From the sequence record OR805292.1: DNA of 64,000 nt; one strand, written 5' to 3'. Positions 5,206 through 16,337 of this stretch are shown in pieces. The stretch's first letter is position 1; each line of letters starts with the position of its first letter. The position numbers were made by a program, and so were the translations under genes. The notes beneath the pieces were generated by a model. The model worked only from the letters and a program-made list of their open reading frames with translations. It did no database searches and had not been told where the DNA came from.

Positions 5206-5840
5206 TATATAAATCCTTTATTATTCTTCAGTAACTCACCTGTCCTAAATTTACTTAGATCAAATGTCTGCCTAACCTCTTGGGGGTTATATTGAGGCTC
5301 TAACGTTATCGTCATAGTTAATTGAGTAGGAACATCTGTATTTTCACTTATATTGTTAAATCTTACAGGAACATAATCTACTTTGTTGTCTAAAATAATA
5401 CTGAAATTTTTAACAACTACTGGCACATTTTTGAACATGTATGTTCCTAAGTAATTAAATGATAAAATAGGCGGCGGTGTGCCTGCTCTTACTAAATCTG
5501 TTTGTCCGAAGTAATTTTTTGTTACTGTTCGCATAAAATGCATTGCTGCTAATGTATATCTTGCCTCTACATCTGTTTGTGATGTAAATATTGCTTCTAC
5601 TGATATAGGCTGAGGTGCAGATTTAACATATGCAAGGTATTTGTAGTTAGTATGAGTAAAATGAAAGGATTCATCGTATTCTGCATCTGCTGCTAATGTA
5701 ACTATCGGTCTGAACGGAAATATCAAACCGCCTGTCTTTTTTAGAGGTGCAAGAATGTTAACAAGCTGGTCGTTACTTTCTCCAAATAAATCATTTGCAG
5801 CTAACGCATTCTTTGGTTTTAAAATTGCTCTACTATCCAC
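5205..5840 (-). CDS. Tail-tube-fold baseplate/tube initiator protein (gp48/gp54/CIS-tube-like)
   Basis: GLIFPFRP, GTPPPILSFNYLG, VPVVVKNFSI pattern; GTG start; late-promoter motif upstream. Confidence 0.65.
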   Translation of the reverse strand: MDSRAILKPKNALAANDLFGESNDQLVNILAPLKKTGGLIFPFRPIVTLAADAEYDESFHFTHTNYKYLAYVKSAPQPISVEAIFTSQTDVEARYTLAAMHFMRTVTKNYFGQTDLVRAGTPPPILSFNYLGTYMFKNVPVVVKNFSIILDNKVDYVPVRFNNISENTDVPTQLTMTITLEPQYNPQEVRQTFDLSKFRTGELLKNNKGFI

Positions 5841-5889
5841 GATATATAATCTCTTTTATATATTTATCAGTAGGTTTATATGCTAATAT

Positions 5890-5918
5890 TTGACTTTGAA
5901 AATATTTTGTTGTAAAAT
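5890..5918 (+). promoter_or_regulatory. sigma70-type promoter for gp55-gp47-gp46
   Basis: TTGACT-17 bp-TAAAAT. Confidence 0.65.
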
Positions 5919-5942
5919 AATAATAAAAAGCATGGATGCACA

Positions 5943-6785
5943 ATGAATACAAAAATTGTAGTTAATTATATTAATAATAAAGAAATGTTAAAGGAAATAC
6001 ATCGTAGTAAAAATTCATTCTGCGAATATATTTCCCCAAAGTATAAAGATTACGATATTATCTTTACTTCAAAAGAAGACTGTCTGAAACAAGAAAATAT
6101 AAACGCAGCAATACTTAAACGAGCAGAGCGTTTAACTCAAGTACAGATAGATGAATATGCATTAAGAACAAATACTAGTTCTAAAAAAGCAAAAGCATCT
6201 ATAACCCAAGTAGATCCTGCAACAATAAATAAACATGATGTTGTTTTTCGTGTTATCACATACGAACATATTCCAGAAGATCATGATAGGAAAAAGACAA
6301 AAAAATCAATTAAAGACTATCATGTTAAGTTAAATTTTACTCCTTTTAAGCATTTTATTATAGACGAAAATAATAACTTAGTAGAAGTAGGCAGAAGTCA
6401 CAGCAAAAAAGGAGAGTTTTGCTTAACTGGAGGATCTATATCAGATAGATTAGCAAAAATGTTTATGTTGTTAATTGACAAATTCGGTCAAAAAAGCAAC
6501 TGGCGTGGATATTCATATCTAGATGAAATGAAGGGACAAGCTTTACTTCAGTTAGCGTCTATGGGGTTGCAATTCGACGAACATTTAAGTGATAATCCCT
6601 TTGCATATTACACTTCGTCTATAAACAATTCTTTTACTAGGGTATTCAACATAGAAAAACGTAATCAAATAATCAGGGACGATTTATTACAAAATATGGG
6701 ACAAAATCCTAGCCTTACTAGACAATTAGAACACGATGAGCAAATTCGGTTGCTCAGAGAATTAAATGATTCTAAAGATGATTAA
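5943..6785 (+). CDS. gp55: Late-transcription sigma factor, T4 gp55-like
   Basis: NYINNKEML N-terminus; NWRGYSYLDEM and NPFAYYT motifs; immediately upstream of gp47/gp46 as in T4. Confidence 0.85.
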   Translation: MNTKIVVNYINNKEMLKEIHRSKNSFCEYISPKYKDYDIIFTSKEDCLKQENINAAILKRAERLTQVQIDEYALRTNTSSKKAKASITQVDPATINKHDVVFRVITYEHIPEDHDRKKTKKSIKDYHVKLNFTPFKHFIIDENNNLVEVGRSHSKKGEFCLTGGSISDRLAKMFMLLIDKFGQKSNWRGYSYLDEMKGQALLQLASMGLQFDEHLSDNPFAYYTSSINNSFTRVFNIEKRNQIIRDDLLQNMGQNPSLTRQLEHDEQIRLLRELNDSKDD

Positions 6786-6796
6786 AAGGATTTAAA

Positions 6797-7810
6797 GTGG
6801 GTAATTTATTTAAGAAAGTTGCATGTTTTAGTGATATTCACTTCGGATTGCATCATAACTCTAAAATTCACAATCAAGACTGTGAAGATTTCATTAAGTG
6901 GTTTTGTAAAACTGCTAAAGAAAAAAATGCAGAAACATGTATATTTTTAGGCGATTGGCATCATACAAGAAACACCATTAATGTATCTACGCTAAACTAC
7001 ACTATGTCTAGTTTAGAACTACTAAACGATACGTTCGAAAAAGTATATTTTATCACTGGCAATCATGACCTTATGTATAGAGAAAAAAGAGAAGTACATT
7101 CTATTCCGATGGGTCACAAATATCCTAATATAGTTATGATAGAAGATCCGTTCGAACAAGGAGATGTATCTATTCTACCGTGGTTAGTAGGAGATGAATG
7201 GAAAGACGTTCCTAAAATAAAAGCAAAATATTTGTTTGGGCATTTAGAAATTCCAGGATTTAAACTAAATGCAATGGTAGAAATGCCCGATGTAGGAGAA
7301 ATAAAATCCGAACATTTTGTTAATCAAACATATGTATTTTCTGGACATTTTCATAAGAGACAAGTAAATGGAAAAATTAATTATATCGGCAATCCATTTG
7401 GTCACAACTATTCTGATGTATGGGATTTTGATAGGGGTGCAATGTTTTTAGAATGGGGAGGGGAGCCTGAATATGTTAATTACGAAGACGGACCCAGGTT
7501 CATATCCACTACATTGAAACAAATACTAGAAAATCCAGATTATTATCTTAAGCCAAAAACTCACGTAAAAGCAACTATAGATGTAGATATAACATACGAA
7601 GAAGCCAATTTCTTACGTGAAACATTCTTGTCTTCATATAAAGTTAGAGAATTTAAATTATTACAGTCTAAATACAGCGAACACGAAATAGAAAGTGATA
7701 CTGAAACAGAATTCGAAACTGTAGATGAAATTGTTATTTCCGAACTAACTAATATTCAAAGTGATAACTTTGATAAAAACATACTTATAAGCATTTACAC
7801 AAACCTATAA
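6797..7810 (+). CDS. gp47: Recombination endonuclease subunit gp47 (Mre11/SbcD-like)
   Basis: Metallophosphoesterase motifs SDIHFG, LGDWHH, GNHD, GHL, SGHFH. Confidence 0.95.
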   Translation: MGNLFKKVACFSDIHFGLHHNSKIHNQDCEDFIKWFCKTAKEKNAETCIFLGDWHHTRNTINVSTLNYTMSSLELLNDTFEKVYFITGNHDLMYREKREVHSIPMGHKYPNIVMIEDPFEQGDVSILPWLVGDEWKDVPKIKAKYLFGHLEIPGFKLNAMVEMPDVGEIKSEHFVNQTYVFSGHFHKRQVNGKINYIGNPFGHNYSDVWDFDRGAMFLEWGGEPEYVNYEDGPRFISTTLKQILENPDYYLKPKTHVKATIDVDITYEEANFLRETFLSSYKVREFKLLQSKYSEHEIESDTETEFETVDEIVISELTNIQSDNFDKNILISIYTNL

Positions 7811-12340: not shown

Positions 12341-12793
12341 ATGAACGATTACACACATTACACAGAGGAAGATTTCATATTTTTAGCATATGATTTAAAT
12401 ACTCAGCTTATAAATGATGGATATCCTGACGCTGCTGTAAAATTTATTACTAATCAGTTTATTTTAGAGCATAGACATCCTGACGAAATAAAACGTTGTA
12501 TAGGATGTAATTCTAAAATGTACGAAGATGTTATTGCTACTAAGAGAAATTTATCTGGTAAATCGCATTGCAGACATTGCGAATCGAAACTTAGTATGTA
12601 TAAGGAAGTTGTTAAGGAAGTAGCAAATACAACACAAATACTTCGCATACCAGAAAAACATTTAAATTCAGTTAAACGATTAATTAGAATATATAATGAG
12701 CAAAACAAAACTAGTGCATATCAGAGTATATTAGTTAAAACAAAGAAACTTAACACAGGAGTTTCTAAAAAGTCAAAAAGAAAGGGACGTTAA
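12341..12793 (+). CDS. Hypothetical Zn-ribbon protein with basic C-terminal tail
   Basis: CIGC...CRHC; tail KTKKLNTGVSKKSKRKGR; GATAAATA at 12301 and SD gagg upstream. Confidence 0.7.
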   Translation: MNDYTHYTEEDFIFLAYDLNTQLINDGYPDAAVKFITNQFILEHRHPDEIKRCIGCNSKMYEDVIATKRNLSGKSHCRHCESKLSMYKEVVKEVANTTQILRIPEKHLNSVKRLIRIYNEQNKTSAYQSILVKTKKLNTGVSKKSKRKGR

Positions 12794-12809
12794 TTGTCCC
12801 TTTCTTTTT
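12775..12809. terminator. Bidirectional terminator
   Basis: aaaaagaaagggac/gtccctttcttttt stem; stop codon of the 150-aa ORF in the loop. Confidence 0.85.
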
Positions 12810-13029
12810 ATAGGAAGCTTCTACCTGTTTCTGCTTCAATTTTTTGTTTAATAAATTCTCCTAAACGTACCCGCTCTTGATATGATAACGACCAAGCAGT
12901 GTGCCAGTCAAACCCATTAATTTTATCACATATTTGGACTATTTCGCCTTCTAATCCCAGTGATTCTTGTTCATATTCTTGTATAACGTTCCTAATATCA
13001 TCTGGGGTTCCCGATACTAGGATTCTCTG
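12808..13029 (-). CDS. Start-less 73-codon frame, probable -1 frameshift extension of 13017..13871 (gp51/gpT-like segment)
   Basis: QRILVSGTPDDIRNVIQEYEQESLGLEGEIVQICDKINGFDWHTAWSLSYQERVRLGEFIKQKIEAETGRSFL*; no ATG/GTG/TTG near its 5' end; begins at slippery heptamer T TTT TTC. Confidence 0.7.
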   Translation of the reverse strand, partial: QRILVSGTPDDIRNVIQEYEQESLGLEGEIVQICDKINGFDWHTAWSLSYQERVRLGEFIKQKIEAETGRSFL

Positions 13030-13871
13030 AAAAAACTTACTGGGTTAAAATCTACAGGTACTACAAAACTTTTATTACAGTTGTCACATACTGCATCAAA
13101 GTCGCCATTAACTCCTACTTGATTTATTTCTTTTAAAAGACTATCTATTTTATTAACATCTGCTCTATCTATATTTGCTATAAATTCTTTTATATCGGCT
13201 AGTGTCTGAGCAGTATTGTTAACTATATCTATACCGTTAGTTTCATCTACAATACGAACTATTGTTTTTGCAATTAATTCAAAATTTAATGTTGACAGTT
13301 CATTTATTGTATTAGAAAATGCAGAAAGTTTTTCTTCATCTGAATACATATCGCTTTGCATTATTCTAATAAATTTTGCTTGTTCTAGTGCAGTTTTTGC
13401 AACTGTCATATTATCTGAAAAATCATATGGTCTAATAAATATAGATAGACCGTTATCAAGGTTCACGACGTATTGGTCTTCTAAATAAGTGGATGTATTA
13501 ATGACATTTAATAAGTCTATTCCATATAAATTTTTATGATTACAATGCGGGCACGTAGAAGAAATATCTATTGTGTTACCGTATGATGCTGCTTTTATAG
13601 CAACACATATCATATGAATGTCATTAATCAAGAGTTTATTTACATCTTTAATTCCTGGTACACAACTCTTAATTACTTCTTTTAAGCCTTCACCGTTCAC
13701 TAATGCATCAGGATTTTTTATTAATACTTCATCTTTTCCTGTCATAGCATATACCCCTAGTTCTCCGGAATCGGTGTATTCTACAACATTTGATGGATAA
13801 AATGAATTTCCGCTGGGCAAACGAATATAAGATTTGAATGTTCTGTAATATTGATGTAATTTGTTGCTCAT
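13017..13871 (-). CDS. Baseplate hub assembly / tape-measure chaperone, gp26-like
   Basis: YIRLPS, AMTGKDEVL, AIKAASYG, CPHC...CDNC pattern of T4 gp26-like proteins; divergent from tape-measure-like gene. Confidence 0.75.
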   Translation of the reverse strand: MSNKLHQYYRTFKSYIRLPSGNSFYPSNVVEYTDSGELGVYAMTGKDEVLIKNPDALVNGEGLKEVIKSCVPGIKDVNKLLINDIHMICVAIKAASYGNTIDISSTCPHCNHKNLYGIDLLNVINTSTYLEDQYVVNLDNGLSIFIRPYDFSDNMTVAKTALEQAKFIRIMQSDMYSDEEKLSAFSNTINELSTLNFELIAKTIVRIVDETNGIDIVNNTAQTLADIKEFIANIDRADVNKIDSLLKEINQVGVNGDFDAVCDNCNKSFVVPVDFNPVSFFRES

Positions 13872-13940
13872 AATGTGTATATGCTCTTTTGATAAATATG
13901 CTATATACCGTATTTATCATAGCATTTTATAGAGGTTCTT

Positions 13941-16337
13941 GTGGCAGAAGATATTAGAATTGTTGGCGTTGATCCTAGTGTCCCCGGCTGGGCTAGAGAA
14001 GAAACTCTTAATAAAATAGTATCTGAGTTAAAAAAACTCAATGGATCTAATACAAGAGAAAACGACGAACTAAAAGATGCAGTAGATGAATTAGTTAGGG
14101 TCACCCGTAGAACTAGCGAAGATACATCTAGAACAGATAATAACACTGAAATAAAAGAAGCATTAAACAGATTATCTTCTTCGTTAAAACAACAGAAAAA
14201 ATCTGATAATTCTTTATCTGCAAAGCAAGGGGGAAACAAACCTCCCGTATTGCCGACTGACAATAAGAAATCTAAATTAGATACAGATACTATAGGCGCA
14301 TTTATTACTGCCGTCGGTACTGCTTCAAAGGCAGTAGCAAAATTTACTTTAAGTATGGCATCTTTTGCAGTTGGTGGAAGTATATACGCTGCATTAAAGC
14401 AAGCTGCATCGTCTCAGCTTACTTTATCTAGAGATTTATATAAATCAGGTTGGAACTTCGGAACGGTATTAGACGATGCATCTGGTATTATTAAATCTAC
14501 TAACTTAGACGGTATTTCGTATGCCATAAAAGGTTTAGGTATAAATTCATCTGCACTATCTGAAGTATTAAAAGGCAATGAATTAGCAATACAAAAATAC
14601 GGAATAAAATCGTTTGTAGATCTGTCTTCTAGCTTAAAAAGACAAGGCAATAGCTTAGGTATGTCTTTAAAAGAAACAGCAGATTATGTAGGAGAATATT
14701 TAGAATCTCAACGTTTAATGGGCACATTTGATAAAATGCGCCAAGTAAACATGACTGCCCTTGCATCTAAAGCACTTAAAGATACCCAAGCATTTGCTAC
14801 TGCGTTAAGAATGTCTACAGAAGACCTTCAGGCAAAAATGAATGAAAGTTTAAAAGATGTAGACTTTCGTGTAGCAATAGAATCAGTTAACGCAAATTCT
14901 AAAGAAGCCGCTGCCCAAATTTATGCTGCTTTGCCGGAACAATTGCAAACTATGTTTAAGGTAGCTCTTAAAGATACTCCGTCTTTTATGGCATCTAAAG
15001 AATACGCCGATTTGATAAAATCTGGACAAGGAGAATTAGCTAGACAAATAATTGCAGTATCATCTGGACTGAAGTCTGGTAATATAACTAACGGTCAGGC
15101 AGATGATGCAATGAAACGACTTATAAAATCTACTAGTTTTGCAGAAAGTACAATGCGTAGACTTGCTATGCTAGATGCTCGTGGACTAATAGATAGTAAT
15201 GTTGCCGCTGCCGCATATGGATTAAAAGACCTTAGAGATAAAATGGATGGTCATTATGAAGGAATCCAAAATACAGAAGCTACAAATTTAGCAAAAGTTG
15301 AAGATGTAAGAAATAGAGCATTAGCTGTATTAGATACGTTTGTATCATCTATAATGAGAGCAGGATTCGAATCTAGTGAATTTGCTAAATTATTAGATAA
15401 TGCAAATGAAATGTTAAAAACAATTCATAATACAGCAGAAGACTTAGGTAAACAACTAGGTCCGGAATTATTTAAATTTGTTAACAATGCTATGGAATAT
15501 CTAAATGGTTTATTTAGTAAAGATGTAGCAGGAAATATAAATGTAAATTATTCTAAAATAATAGGAGATATTTTAACAAGTTCTGGTGCTGCTATAGTAG
15601 TTGGCGTTCTTGCTATTATGACTACATTTAAAGGTGTTGTTATTTCTTCGTTATCGTCGTGGCTTAAAGGTGCATCGGGACCTATGTCATCATTAGGTGG
15701 CACAGTAAAAACTATAGCAGGAAGATTAGGATCATTTGCAGCACTAGCAGTATCGTTTACGAATGGAATAGGTAGATTAAGTCAATCAATTTCGGACGGC
15801 GGCGATGCAATAGAATCTGCATTAAATTTTTTATCAGGCGCAGGCGAAGGTATAATAGATCCTGTGTTCAAATCCCTTACATGGGCAGCTAACAAATTAG
15901 GTATAGTATCTGATGAAGCAGCAGATGGATTTAGTAAATACATCAGTGATACTAATTTGCAACAGTTCTTGGGTCTACAAGATATACCTATAAAAGTAGA
16001 AACTACTAATAAACCTGCATATACACCGCCTGGACCTACTGCTACTAAAACATCTGCATACGGTAAAATAGAAACTCCGAAAGCTCCTGCTATAATCCCT
16101 ACAGCTCAGCCAGATGTAGCAGACGCAGCAAAACAAAGTCCTACTCCTGTAGATCCTACTAGCAATATAAAGCCTATAGAAAATACAGGAATGAGTTCTC
16201 AAGACATGCTAAATAGAAGTACAGATAAACTTATACGTTTACAAGAAGAACAAATACGACAGTTACAAGAGCTTGTAGATATTCAGCGCAGAGCATTAGC
16301 TGCTACTAGAGAAACTGGATTTACAAGAACTAGGTAA
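13941..16337 (+). CDS. Tape-measure-like protein
   Basis: Long Ala/Leu/Lys-rich helical sequence with hydrophobic segments and a Pro-rich tail; next to gp26-like chaperone. Confidence 0.6.
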   Translation: MAEDIRIVGVDPSVPGWAREETLNKIVSELKKLNGSNTRENDELKDAVDELVRVTRRTSEDTSRTDNNTEIKEALNRLSSSLKQQKKSDNSLSAKQGGNKPPVLPTDNKKSKLDTDTIGAFITAVGTASKAVAKFTLSMASFAVGGSIYAALKQAASSQLTLSRDLYKSGWNFGTVLDDASGIIKSTNLDGISYAIKGLGINSSALSEVLKGNELAIQKYGIKSFVDLSSSLKRQGNSLGMSLKETADYVGEYLESQRLMGTFDKMRQVNMTALASKALKDTQAFATALRMSTEDLQAKMNESLKDVDFRVAIESVNANSKEAAAQIYAALPEQLQTMFKVALKDTPSFMASKEYADLIKSGQGELARQIIAVSSGLKSGNITNGQADDAMKRLIKSTSFAESTMRRLAMLDARGLIDSNVAAAAYGLKDLRDKMDGHYEGIQNTEATNLAKVEDVRNRALAVLDTFVSSIMRAGFESSEFAKLLDNANEMLKTIHNTAEDLGKQLGPELFKFVNNAMEYLNGLFSKDVAGNINVNYSKIIGDILTSSGAAIVVGVLAIMTTFKGVVISSLSSWLKGASGPMSSLGGTVKTIAGRLGSFAALAVSFTNGIGRLSQSISDGGDAIESALNFLSGAGEGIIDPVFKSLTWAANKLGIVSDEAADGFSKYISDTNLQQFLGLQDIPIKVETTNKPAYTPPGPTATKTSAYGKIETPKAPAIIPTAQPDVADAAKQSPTPVDPTSNIKPIENTGMSSQDMLNRSTDKLIRLQEEQIRQLQELVDIQRRALAATRETGFTRTR

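Follow-up and report, generated by a model that had tools for sequence, protein, structure and literature searches.

Background

Programmed -1 frameshifting in the genes of tail-assembly chaperones is a hallmark of long-tailed phages. In phage lambda, the tail assembly chaperones are reportedly gpG and gpGT (Xu, Hendrix and Duda 2004, Mol Cell 16:11; cited in PMC9024508). To our knowledge, phage T4 and its relatives stand outside this rule of tail-chaperone frameshifting, and the roles of T4 gp26 and gp51 have been obscure since the 1970s. Here we describe a gene of the gp26/gp51 family in Pseudomonas phage Cassandra (OR805292; Wroclawvirus, PA5oct-like), found on the minus strand of a 64-kilobase (kb) stretch of that genome (the window), which is very probably decoded in two ways by a -1 slip just before its stop codon. 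An original prediction, made from the letters of the window alone, had proposed a programmed -1 frameshift at this place, fusing a gp26-like chaperone to a start-less segment resembling gp51 or lambda gpT.

In a review of T4 (PMC3004832), gp26 and gp51 are described as hub assembly chaperones; gp51, whose function is given there as unknown, is essential and does not occur in the particle.

Results

Organisation of the locus in phage Cassandra

The zero-frame open reading frame (ORF) occupied positions 13017..13871 on the minus strand and encoded a short product of 284 amino acids (aa) from an ATG start. Its 3' end read ...agT TTT TTC AGA GAA TCC TAG; the slippery heptamer T TTT TTC (13029..13035, minus strand) was in the X XXY YYZ register of the zero frame (agT TTT TTC), with the TAG stop (13017..13019, minus strand) three codons 3' of it. 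The -1 frame was closed upstream by a TAA at 13047-13045, and was open from 13044 to a second TAA, read from the sequence at 12808..12810 (minus strand). From the heptamer onwards, with base 13029 being read twice, this frame provided an extension of 73 codons (QRILVSG...GRSFL; 12811..13029, minus strand). No ATG, GTG or TTG codon occurred among the 73, and the ORF listing, with a minimum of 20 aa, found no ORF there.

The predicted long product comprises 281 + 73 = 354 aa, of which the first 281 residues are common to both products. The predicted fusion junction is ...PVSFF joined to QRILVSGTPDDIR, which would yield a tryptic junction peptide SFVVPVDFNPVSFFQR specific to the long form, with ILVSGTPDDIR as the downstream peptide; the predicted C-terminal peptide of the 284-aa short form is SFVVPVDFNPVSFFR. 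The ORF, the heptamer and both TAA codons lay exactly where the original prediction had placed them, and its two product sizes and the junction were recovered as first written. Its description of a start-less 73-codon frame ending at a terminator agreed with the ORF listing and with the position of the sole terminator-like site nearby (see below).

The window region was 100% identical to the Cassandra record and 98.4-98.7% identical to ten other records of the PA5oct-like group. None of the inspected annotated records of this locus carried a frameshift annotation; for phage PAC2, the annotation gives an ORF on the other strand.

Conservation of the heptamer and the -1 frame

Eighty loci from IMG/VR with relatives at 28-43% protein identity (the jumbo-type set) and a further 80 loci (the cyanophage-type set) were each analysed by script; pooling of all sets gave 130 distinct loci, which are mutually related, so that the counts below are not of independent events and overstate their number. 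Every jumbo-type locus had an in-register heptamer 10-40 nucleotides (nt) before the stop codon. Most of these loci had TTTTTTC; one clade had A AAT TTT and another TTTTTTT. Where jumbo-type loci were complete, the -1 frame remained open for 173-263 nt past the stop, while the +1 frame was open for only 7-211 nt (and for less than 65 nt in all but two). In the cyanophage-type set, TTTTTTC began exactly 10 nt before the stop in all cases, and complete loci had a -1 ORF of 64-70 codons. The heptamer was in register at all 130 distinct loci (121 TTTTTTC, 8 AAATTTT and 1 TTTTTTT); the distance from its first base to the zero-frame stop was 10-40 nt, and exactly 10 nt at 93 loci, while the -1 frame ran on for approximately 60-90 codons.

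Conservation was not confined to the encoded amino acids. At each of the 122 T-type loci the X base was T, whichever of eight residues preceded; at comparable positions in other codons of the same genes, T made up 69%. Similarly, the phenylalanine codon pair was TTT-TTC at 121 loci, while TTT and TTC were used in the ratio 71:29 elsewhere. Since X at the T-type loci was always T although its codon encoded eight amino acids, the comparison of sequences indicates selection on the nucleotide sequence itself, as a slippery site requires.

The arrangement was also present in named phages. It was found in the jumbo phages Atu_ph07, 121Q, RaK2 and CBB, and three more remote relatives, cyanophage S-WAM1, Agrobacterium phage OLIVR5 and Cronobacter phage LPCS28 (of the Straboviridae), had TTTTTTC 10-13 nt before the stop, followed by a -1 ORF of 59-67 codons. 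In total, 10 named phages shared the architecture, and Pelagibacter phage Mosig was among the loci; recurrence on this scale goes well beyond chance. The frameshift loci spanned five lineages: Kyanoviridae, Pootjesviridae, Straboviridae, Arenbergviridae and several unclassified jumbo genera.

Within the extension region of 77 loci, the -1 frame contained no stop codons, where the two remaining frames had 575 and 497. Pairwise differences were distributed over the three -1 codon positions in the ratio 1600:852:3214. Judged by this third-position bias and the lack of stops, the -1 frame evolves as a translated frame and is under purifying selection. The -1 peptides were homologous among loci and to that of Cassandra; an alignment of 68 distinct extensions from other loci (A2) had the consensus FFRxxLLxLxxxEI...KALKK...CWYMRGGxSYxEAxxLSxxERxII..IIKxNLETTK..GLPFF. 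On the opposite strand, inside the Cassandra extension, there is a 43-aa ORF with a GTG start (12899-13030, plus strand), which corresponds to hypothetical protein XAI94002.1 of PAC2. It is probably spurious, because the sequence that it overlaps evolves as coding sequence on the other strand.

RNA structure and transcription termination

A candidate stimulator of frameshifting, a predicted RNA hairpin at 12990..13022 (minus strand), started 6 nt 3' of the heptamer and enclosed the TAG stop. Its folding energy was -13.8 kcal/mol (z = -2.3), and 5 of 200 shuffled sequences folded as well. In the family as a whole, mean z was -1.39 for the 55 nt that follow the site, compared with +0.3 to -0.4 in control windows from the same loci; values below -2 were obtained for 32% of downstream windows and for 4-10% of controls. 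In one subclade there was a helix with compensatory changes. No obvious upstream element resembling a Shine-Dalgarno sequence was seen on reading the Cassandra sequence. The downstream hairpin probably helps frameshifting. ARAGORN identified no transfer RNA (tRNA) or transfer-messenger RNA genes across the whole 64-kb window, and so nothing there suggests that a phage-encoded tRNA-Phe acts on the slippery site.

A hairpin followed by a T tract, resembling an intrinsic terminator, was located at 12774..12810 (minus strand), where it overlapped the -1 stop and not the zero-frame stop. This was the only terminator-like site between 12500 and 14200, a region for which shuffled sequence gave 0.4 on average. 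The terminator lies between convergent genes, these being the -1 extension and a plus-strand gene at 12341-12793 (150 aa, no family). The stop codon of the latter falls inside the terminator, which has A and T runs on both sides and may work in both directions.

The protein body belongs to the gp26/gp51 family

The 284-aa protein matched Pfam family PF12322 (T4_baseplate) with E = 3e-25 and 89.6 bits (cut-off 24.5), residues 38-282 being aligned to positions 16-219 of the 219 in the profile. The match reached the last profile position at residue 282, and the slip site is therefore placed exactly at the end of the domain. The protein also matched phrog_150 ('baseplate hub'; E = 5e-23), reaching only position 226 of 282. 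An NCBIfam search found nothing. Only one copy of the gene was detectable in the Cassandra genome. A search of 5.8 billion proteins produced 95 relatives, nearly all of them 275-303 aa in length, with a conserved C-terminal motif (...NFF, SFF or DFF); none of the 95 had the extension fused in frame. The AlphaFold2 (AF2) model of the 284-aa protein had a predicted local distance difference test score (pLDDT) of 88, and its structural relatives in BFVD were all 'baseplate hub' proteins of the gp26/gp51 type.

Two CxxC pairs were observed in the Cassandra protein, at residues 107-110 (CPHC) and 262-265 (CDNC), which are kept in most, not all, members of the family. At the matching places T4 gp26 has CxC and CxxC, while T4 gp51 has CxxC and CC. 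Both pairs lay on beta hairpins in the AF2 model, and weak fold matches there were to the zinc ribbons of NrdR; the model suggests that the two distant pairs could form a split zinc ribbon.

Correspondence with T4 gp26 and gp51

T4 gp26 (208 aa) matched PF12322 with E = 8.8e-64 (215.6 bits) and ended with the domain. T4 gp51 (249 aa) matched with E = 3.9e-52 (177.5 bits), its residues 1-201 spanning the whole profile and being followed by a tail of approximately 48 aa; its match to phrog_150 extended as far as position 280 of 282, and its C-terminus also matched phrog_634. Because both proteins match PF12322 over the whole profile, they are paralogues, and by sequence they correspond to the short and the long product, respectively, of a single frameshifting gene. 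T4 gene 26 ends in ..KEFFELL and a stop codon. Its FF codons, TTC TTT, are not slippery, and gene 25 starts on the gene 26 stop codon, with no extension there. In T4, genes 26 and 51 are divergently transcribed neighbours (5803-7229 of the T4 locus sequence), and a product from an internal start, 26', is annotated with 96 aa. T4 obtains several size forms of the PF12322 family by means other than recoding.

Copy number and phylogeny supported this correspondence. Frameshift phages had one detectable copy per genome (100 places in 100 records, and 588 places in 588 records). Genes of the gp51 type, encoded in one frame, occurred in 1380 records and, among the matches listed, all belonged to T-even-like phages of approximately 160-180 kb. 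In a maximum likelihood tree, gp26 of T4 and avDM7, gp51 of T4 and avDM7 and the frameshifting gene of LPCS28 formed one clade (support 97/95), separate from those of the cyanophages and the jumbo phages. This topology points to an origin of the gp26/gp51 duplication inside the Straboviridae.

In Acinetobacter phage Konradin (MN648195.1, 119940-120689), a gp51 homologue is annotated as 'tape measure protein assembly chaperone'. A chaperone role for gp51 has already been proposed, therefore, by at least one annotator, without the context of a frameshift.

The -1 extension and the gp51 tail

The AF2 model of the Cassandra extension consisted of four helices (pLDDT 89). Profile searches connected extensions of other phages with the C-terminus of gp51. 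The -1 ORFs of S-WAM1, LPCS28 and OLIVR5 matched phrog_634, 'baseplate hub assembly catalyst' (E = 4e-31, 6e-11 and 3e-8, respectively), and those of S-WAM1 and LPCS28 also matched the tail of phrog_150 (positions 231-276 and 231-281, respectively). When the alignment of cyanophage-type extensions (A5) was compared with T4 gp51 using hhalign, columns 2-47 were aligned to residues 200-244 with 29% identity, in a register that placed the second F of the FF motif at F200 of gp51. On this evidence from alignment, the cyanophage-type -1 extension is homologous to the T4 gp51 tail.

A hidden Markov model (HMM) of A5 was searched against 6633 stop-to-stop segments from every locus. Beyond its own set it matched gp51 of T4 (2e-5) and of avDM7 (3e-6), as well as two jumbo-type extensions (0.009), and nothing else; when iterated, it recruited 55 jumbo-type extension ORFs with no off-target matches. 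The Cassandra extension itself had no match in the PHROG and Pfam libraries that were used, the Pfam copy being one without PF28602. In the language-model features of a protein atlas, its closest neighbours were viral clusters without a name, of 71-89 aa; the highest-placed family with a name was 'Baseplate hub assembly catalyst' (Gp51_C, PF28602), at 0.92 with 178 shared features, where 170 is the guide to reliability, and this family accounted for 22 of 100 matches. A motif shared by the extension and the gp51 tail could be read by eye, S.SE....(M/L)(P/S).ER..(I/Y)...(I/L)(I/L), at the same position after the FF and in segments of similar length. Homology between the Cassandra extension and the gp51 tail is, on these comparisons, probable rather than proven.

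Other candidates for a relative of the Cassandra extension were rejected. Direct comparison with T4 gp51, gp28 and gp25 gave hhalign probabilities of 10.8%, 0.1% and 0.4%, respectively. An apparent match to gp51 residues 40-75 was spurious; the real correspondence was to residues 200-249, by way of the cyanophage-type extensions. When the model of the extension was used for fold searches, Foldseek returned nothing from the PDB with E < 1, and a shape search of the ESM Atlas gave only generic helical matches. Searches of PDB sequences with the A1 and A2 profiles found nothing.

The claim of a gp51-like segment was supported, with a correction: the tail of gp51 is the homologue of the cyanophage-type extension, while gp51 as a whole is a full paralogue of gp26 with its own domain. 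The comparison of the extension with gp51 that the original prediction had suggested yielded nothing against the single T4 sequence, and a weak link by way of the cyanophage-type extensions.

Alternative explanations

One alternative is that the 73-codon frame is an independent, miniature 'gp51' gene, expressed from its own, possibly non-canonical, start or through termination-reinitiation. Stand-alone ORFs have indeed been annotated at this place in several phages: gp595 of 121Q (2220-2429 of its locus sequence, as for the coordinates that follow), gp249 of CBB (2367-2543), gp687 of Atu_ph07 (2430-2552), the 57-aa 'gp51' of S-PM2 (1303-1476), Syn19_013 (1348-1485), Mosig_00136 (1348-1482) and gp159c of OLIVR5 (1620-1760), the last under the name that T4 gp51 bears, 'baseplate hub assembly catalyst'. 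A Pfam family of small proteins, Gp51_C, exists, and a phmmer search of 1.8 billion representatives with the extension returned six stand-alone predictions of 69-88 aa and no in-frame fusions. Against this, the Cassandra frame has none of the three usual start codons, and no start codon was conserved in the -1 frame of relatives, where the first in-frame one occurred at +9 to +150 nt and many loci had none before about +100. Amino acid conservation (FFR.RLL...) began at the heptamer, upstream of every annotated start and within the overlap with the zero frame, and the -1 frame was usually closed by a stop 6-27 nt upstream of the heptamer. Furthermore, synonymous positions of the in-register heptamer are under constraint, and in T4 gp51 the domain continues in frame into the same segment. 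The annotated mini-ORFs are -1 extension pieces called from the first internal start codon; in the jumbo phages 121Q, CBB, Atu_ph07 and RaK2, the extension region is either unannotated or given as ORFs of 40-69 aa. Both phrog_18291 and phrog_634 appear to have been built from such pieces. An independent gene was considered improbable. In the open full-text literature, no description of this frameshift was found.

Transcriptional slippage, whereby RNA polymerase adds a U within the U6 run and a subset of mRNAs encodes the fusion, was rated as scarcely more probable than an independent gene. The site is a homopolymer, its coding strand having T6 (or, in one clade, T7), and the RNA sequencing (RNA-seq) runs were examined as assembler contigs, which hide minority variants and could hide minority edited transcripts. 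Nevertheless, runs of T5-T6 are shorter than the slippage sites known to be efficient in bacteria and insertion sequence elements. Eight loci had A AAT TTT, a classical tandem-slippage heptamer with only T5, while the Z base was C at 121 of 130 loci and so does not extend the run. The contigs derived from RNA-seq carried the unedited run, and the excess of downstream RNA structure is a feature of ribosomal frameshifting. The least credible alternative, to which almost no weight was given, holds that the arrangement reflects an error of sequencing or assembly, or the decaying tail of a pseudogene without function. Homopolymer runs are error-prone in some sequencing chemistries, and an indel in the run had been named in the original prediction as grounds for abandoning it. 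However, locus length and heptamer were the same in PAC2 and PA5oct as in Cassandra, and contigs from two RNA-seq and two DNA runs covered 12700-14000 with substitutions only, and no inserted or deleted letters. An indel at the heptamer is excluded. In PAC2 and PA5oct the extension peptide was 100% conserved, all three substitutions being at third codon positions of the -1 frame, and the same frame structure recurred, under purifying selection, at approximately 130 diverged loci. Programmed -1 frameshifting, as first proposed, is the explanation that agrees with a heptamer in register at 130 of 130 loci, the conservation that had been put forward as a check, and with a -1 frame free of stops.

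Genomic context

Divergent from the Cassandra gene is an ORF of 798 aa (13941..16337, plus strand), a candidate tape-measure protein that may be a client of the chaperone pair. Its orthologue in PA5oct was identified as a virion protein by mass spectrometry (MS), the syntenic ORF088 of RaK2 is annotated as tape-measure-like, and its atlas features resembled those of tape-measure clusters (0.94); it had no match in Pfam, PHROG or NCBIfam. Unlike this neighbour, the PA5oct orthologue of the 284-aa protein carried no note of detection by virion MS. In cyanophage S-PM2 the gene order was a tail-tube-family gene (phrog_45), gp26 plus the extension, and a protein of 1167 aa matching tape-measure family phrog_9570 (E = 5e-21). 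LPCS28 and OLIVR5 had a similar layout, in which the downstream proteins (610 and 642 aa, respectively) were of unknown family.

Discussion

A single gene of the gp26/gp51 family, decoded in two ways through a -1 slip, is the likely explanation for the sequence patterns at this locus. On this model, most ribosomes would end at the TAG (13019-13017) and release the 284-aa protein, the equivalent of T4 gp26. A fraction would slip back by one base on U UUU UUC (13035-13029) with tRNA-Phe in both the P and A sites, probably aided by the hairpin 6 nt downstream, and would then read 73 codons to the TAA (12810-12808). The resulting protein of 354 aa, with its four-helix C-terminal module, would be the equivalent of T4 gp51, that is, the domain plus the Gp51_C tail. 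Both forms would be produced at a fixed ratio from one mRNA ending at the terminator just past the -1 stop. By analogy with T4 gp26/gp51 and lambda G/GT, they could act as non-virion chaperones for the hub, the tape measure and the initiation of the tube, the extension supplying an additional binding surface. We infer the ribosomal nature of the slippage and its efficiency, as well as what the hairpin does, that the proteins are chaperones and which client they serve. The parts of the model differ in strength: that a recoded long form is made is very probable from the sequence evidence, while a G/GT-like chaperone function for both forms, argued from analogy, is favoured by a modest margin.

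Several observations weigh against this interpretation, in addition to the mutual relatedness of the IMG/VR loci. All of the evidence for two products comes from sequence: from how the locus is built, from a heptamer and a -1 coding frame that are conserved, and from T4 gp26 and gp51 being paralogues of the gene. The A5 profile representing the gp51 tail did not recruit the Cassandra extension, even when iterated, and the hhalign comparison between jumbo-type A2 and cyanophage-type A5 was weak (E = 0.027, probability 1.8%). Because there was no direct recruitment by profile, the proposed homology of the Cassandra extension with the gp51 tail depends on position, a weak bridging match and language-model features. 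With respect to RNA structure, RNAalifold gave no family-wide consensus (zero pairs), and in one subclade no more than 1-3 nt separated the helix from the heptamer. The case for the 798-aa neighbour as a tape-measure protein is weak, and no similarity of sequence or fold to the tail assembly chaperones of the lambda type (G, T, HK97) rose above noise.

Taken over the whole family, the data slightly favour a wider reading, in which PF12322 proteins are the T4-type counterpart of G/GT; the frameshift would be ancestral and still predominant across T4-like phages, and the T-even lineage would have exchanged recoding for duplication, gp26 having become the fixed short form and gp51 the fixed long one. 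The range of the frameshift on that reading, held with the same slight preference, would take in cyanophages, pelagiphages, Pootjesviridae, some Straboviridae and jumbo phages of the RaK2, PA5oct and Atu_ph07 types. The comparison suggests that T4 genes 26 and 51 are the split version of one recoded gene. If the frameshift is indeed ancestral, this would explain why T4 seems to lack the near-universal tail-chaperone frameshift. The original prediction had linked the T4-type hub-assembly pair with the G/GT principle in a jumbo myovirus; the link itself was supported, and its range was too narrow, since the arrangement is widespread in T4-like phages, with T4 being the exception.

Should the site work as inferred, several hundred sequenced phage genomes are misannotated, in that truncated mini-ORFs stand where the long product should be listed. 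Moreover, gp26 and gp51 would then be two obligatory forms of one chaperone, the function of which is directly testable, and the pair would be a clear natural case in which gene duplication and subfunctionalisation took the place of recoding. Mechanistic studies also gain a bacterial U UUU UUC frameshift signal that is very highly conserved and comes in many natural variants. Judged by sequence, this is a deeply conserved, unannotated -1 recoding site, which adds to the known tail-chaperone frameshifts and reinterprets T4 genes 26 and 51.

Comparison with known systems

As in lambda G/GT, the Cassandra gene is predicted to give two products with a common N-terminal body, the long one through a -1 slip on a heptamer of the X XXY YYZ form. 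In both systems the gene is a small one for tail assembly, the slip site lies a few codons ahead of its stop, and the extension has no start of its own. Lambda G/GT lies between V and H; the gene in S-PM2, LPCS28 and OLIVR5 is likewise located between a gene of the tail-tube type and a gene for a large protein. The Cassandra protein, like G/GT, is probably absent from the virion. However, the body here is a PF12322 domain of approximately 200-280 aa with two CxxC pairs, instead of a spiral chaperone of approximately 100 aa; the heptamer is U UUU UUC instead of G GGA AAG; and the Cassandra gene is divergent from the candidate tape-measure gene instead of upstream of it.

Searches for a family relationship with lambda-type chaperones gave only background matches. 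Against PHROG tail-chaperone profiles the 284-aa protein scored E = 0.01 and 0.26 at best. Its model gave no Foldseek match in the PDB below E = 0.3, and only helical-hairpin matches in the AFDB Swiss-Prot and VIA searches. The HK97 chaperone 2ob9 was considered and rejected; the match covered 98 of 104 residues and was within noise (Foldseek E = 4.6; VIA Z = 5.0, where 792 chains score Z >= 5). The suggestion of a gpT-like segment was not supported beyond a functional analogy, no similarity of sequence or fold to lambda gpT or gpG having been found. The resemblance to lambda G/GT is one of working principle, argued by analogy, and not of family membership.

The same principle operates in P2 gpE/gpE+E', which belongs to a phage with a contractile tail (a myovirus). 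The atlas features of the extension touched a Phage_P2_GpE cluster (0.91, 158 shared features, which is below the guide of 170), and this is only a lead towards a deeper connection of gp51 tails with the classical tail chaperones. No alignment speaks for homology between P2 E/E+E' and the extension.

The closest described loci are those of S-PM2, with gp26 and the 57-aa 'gp51' (T4-like gene clusters 11 and 12). As in Cassandra, a PF12322 gene, here ending in ..SFFA and a stop codon, contains TTTTTTC 10 nt before that stop and is followed by a -1 ORF of approximately 60-70 codons. The S-PM2 records differ in that they treat 'gp51' as a gene in its own right and nowhere as the product of a frameshift, while the Cassandra extension is a more divergent, jumbo-phage subtype that the PHROG and Pfam models used did not recognise. 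T4 shares the PF12322 family itself. Its gp26 ends right after the FF motif, like the zero-frame product of Cassandra, and the tail of approximately 48 aa on its gp51 is homologous, by alignment, to the cyanophage-type -1 extension and probably to that of Cassandra. Where T4 has two divergently transcribed, paralogous genes and no recoding, however, one gene would serve for both forms in Cassandra.

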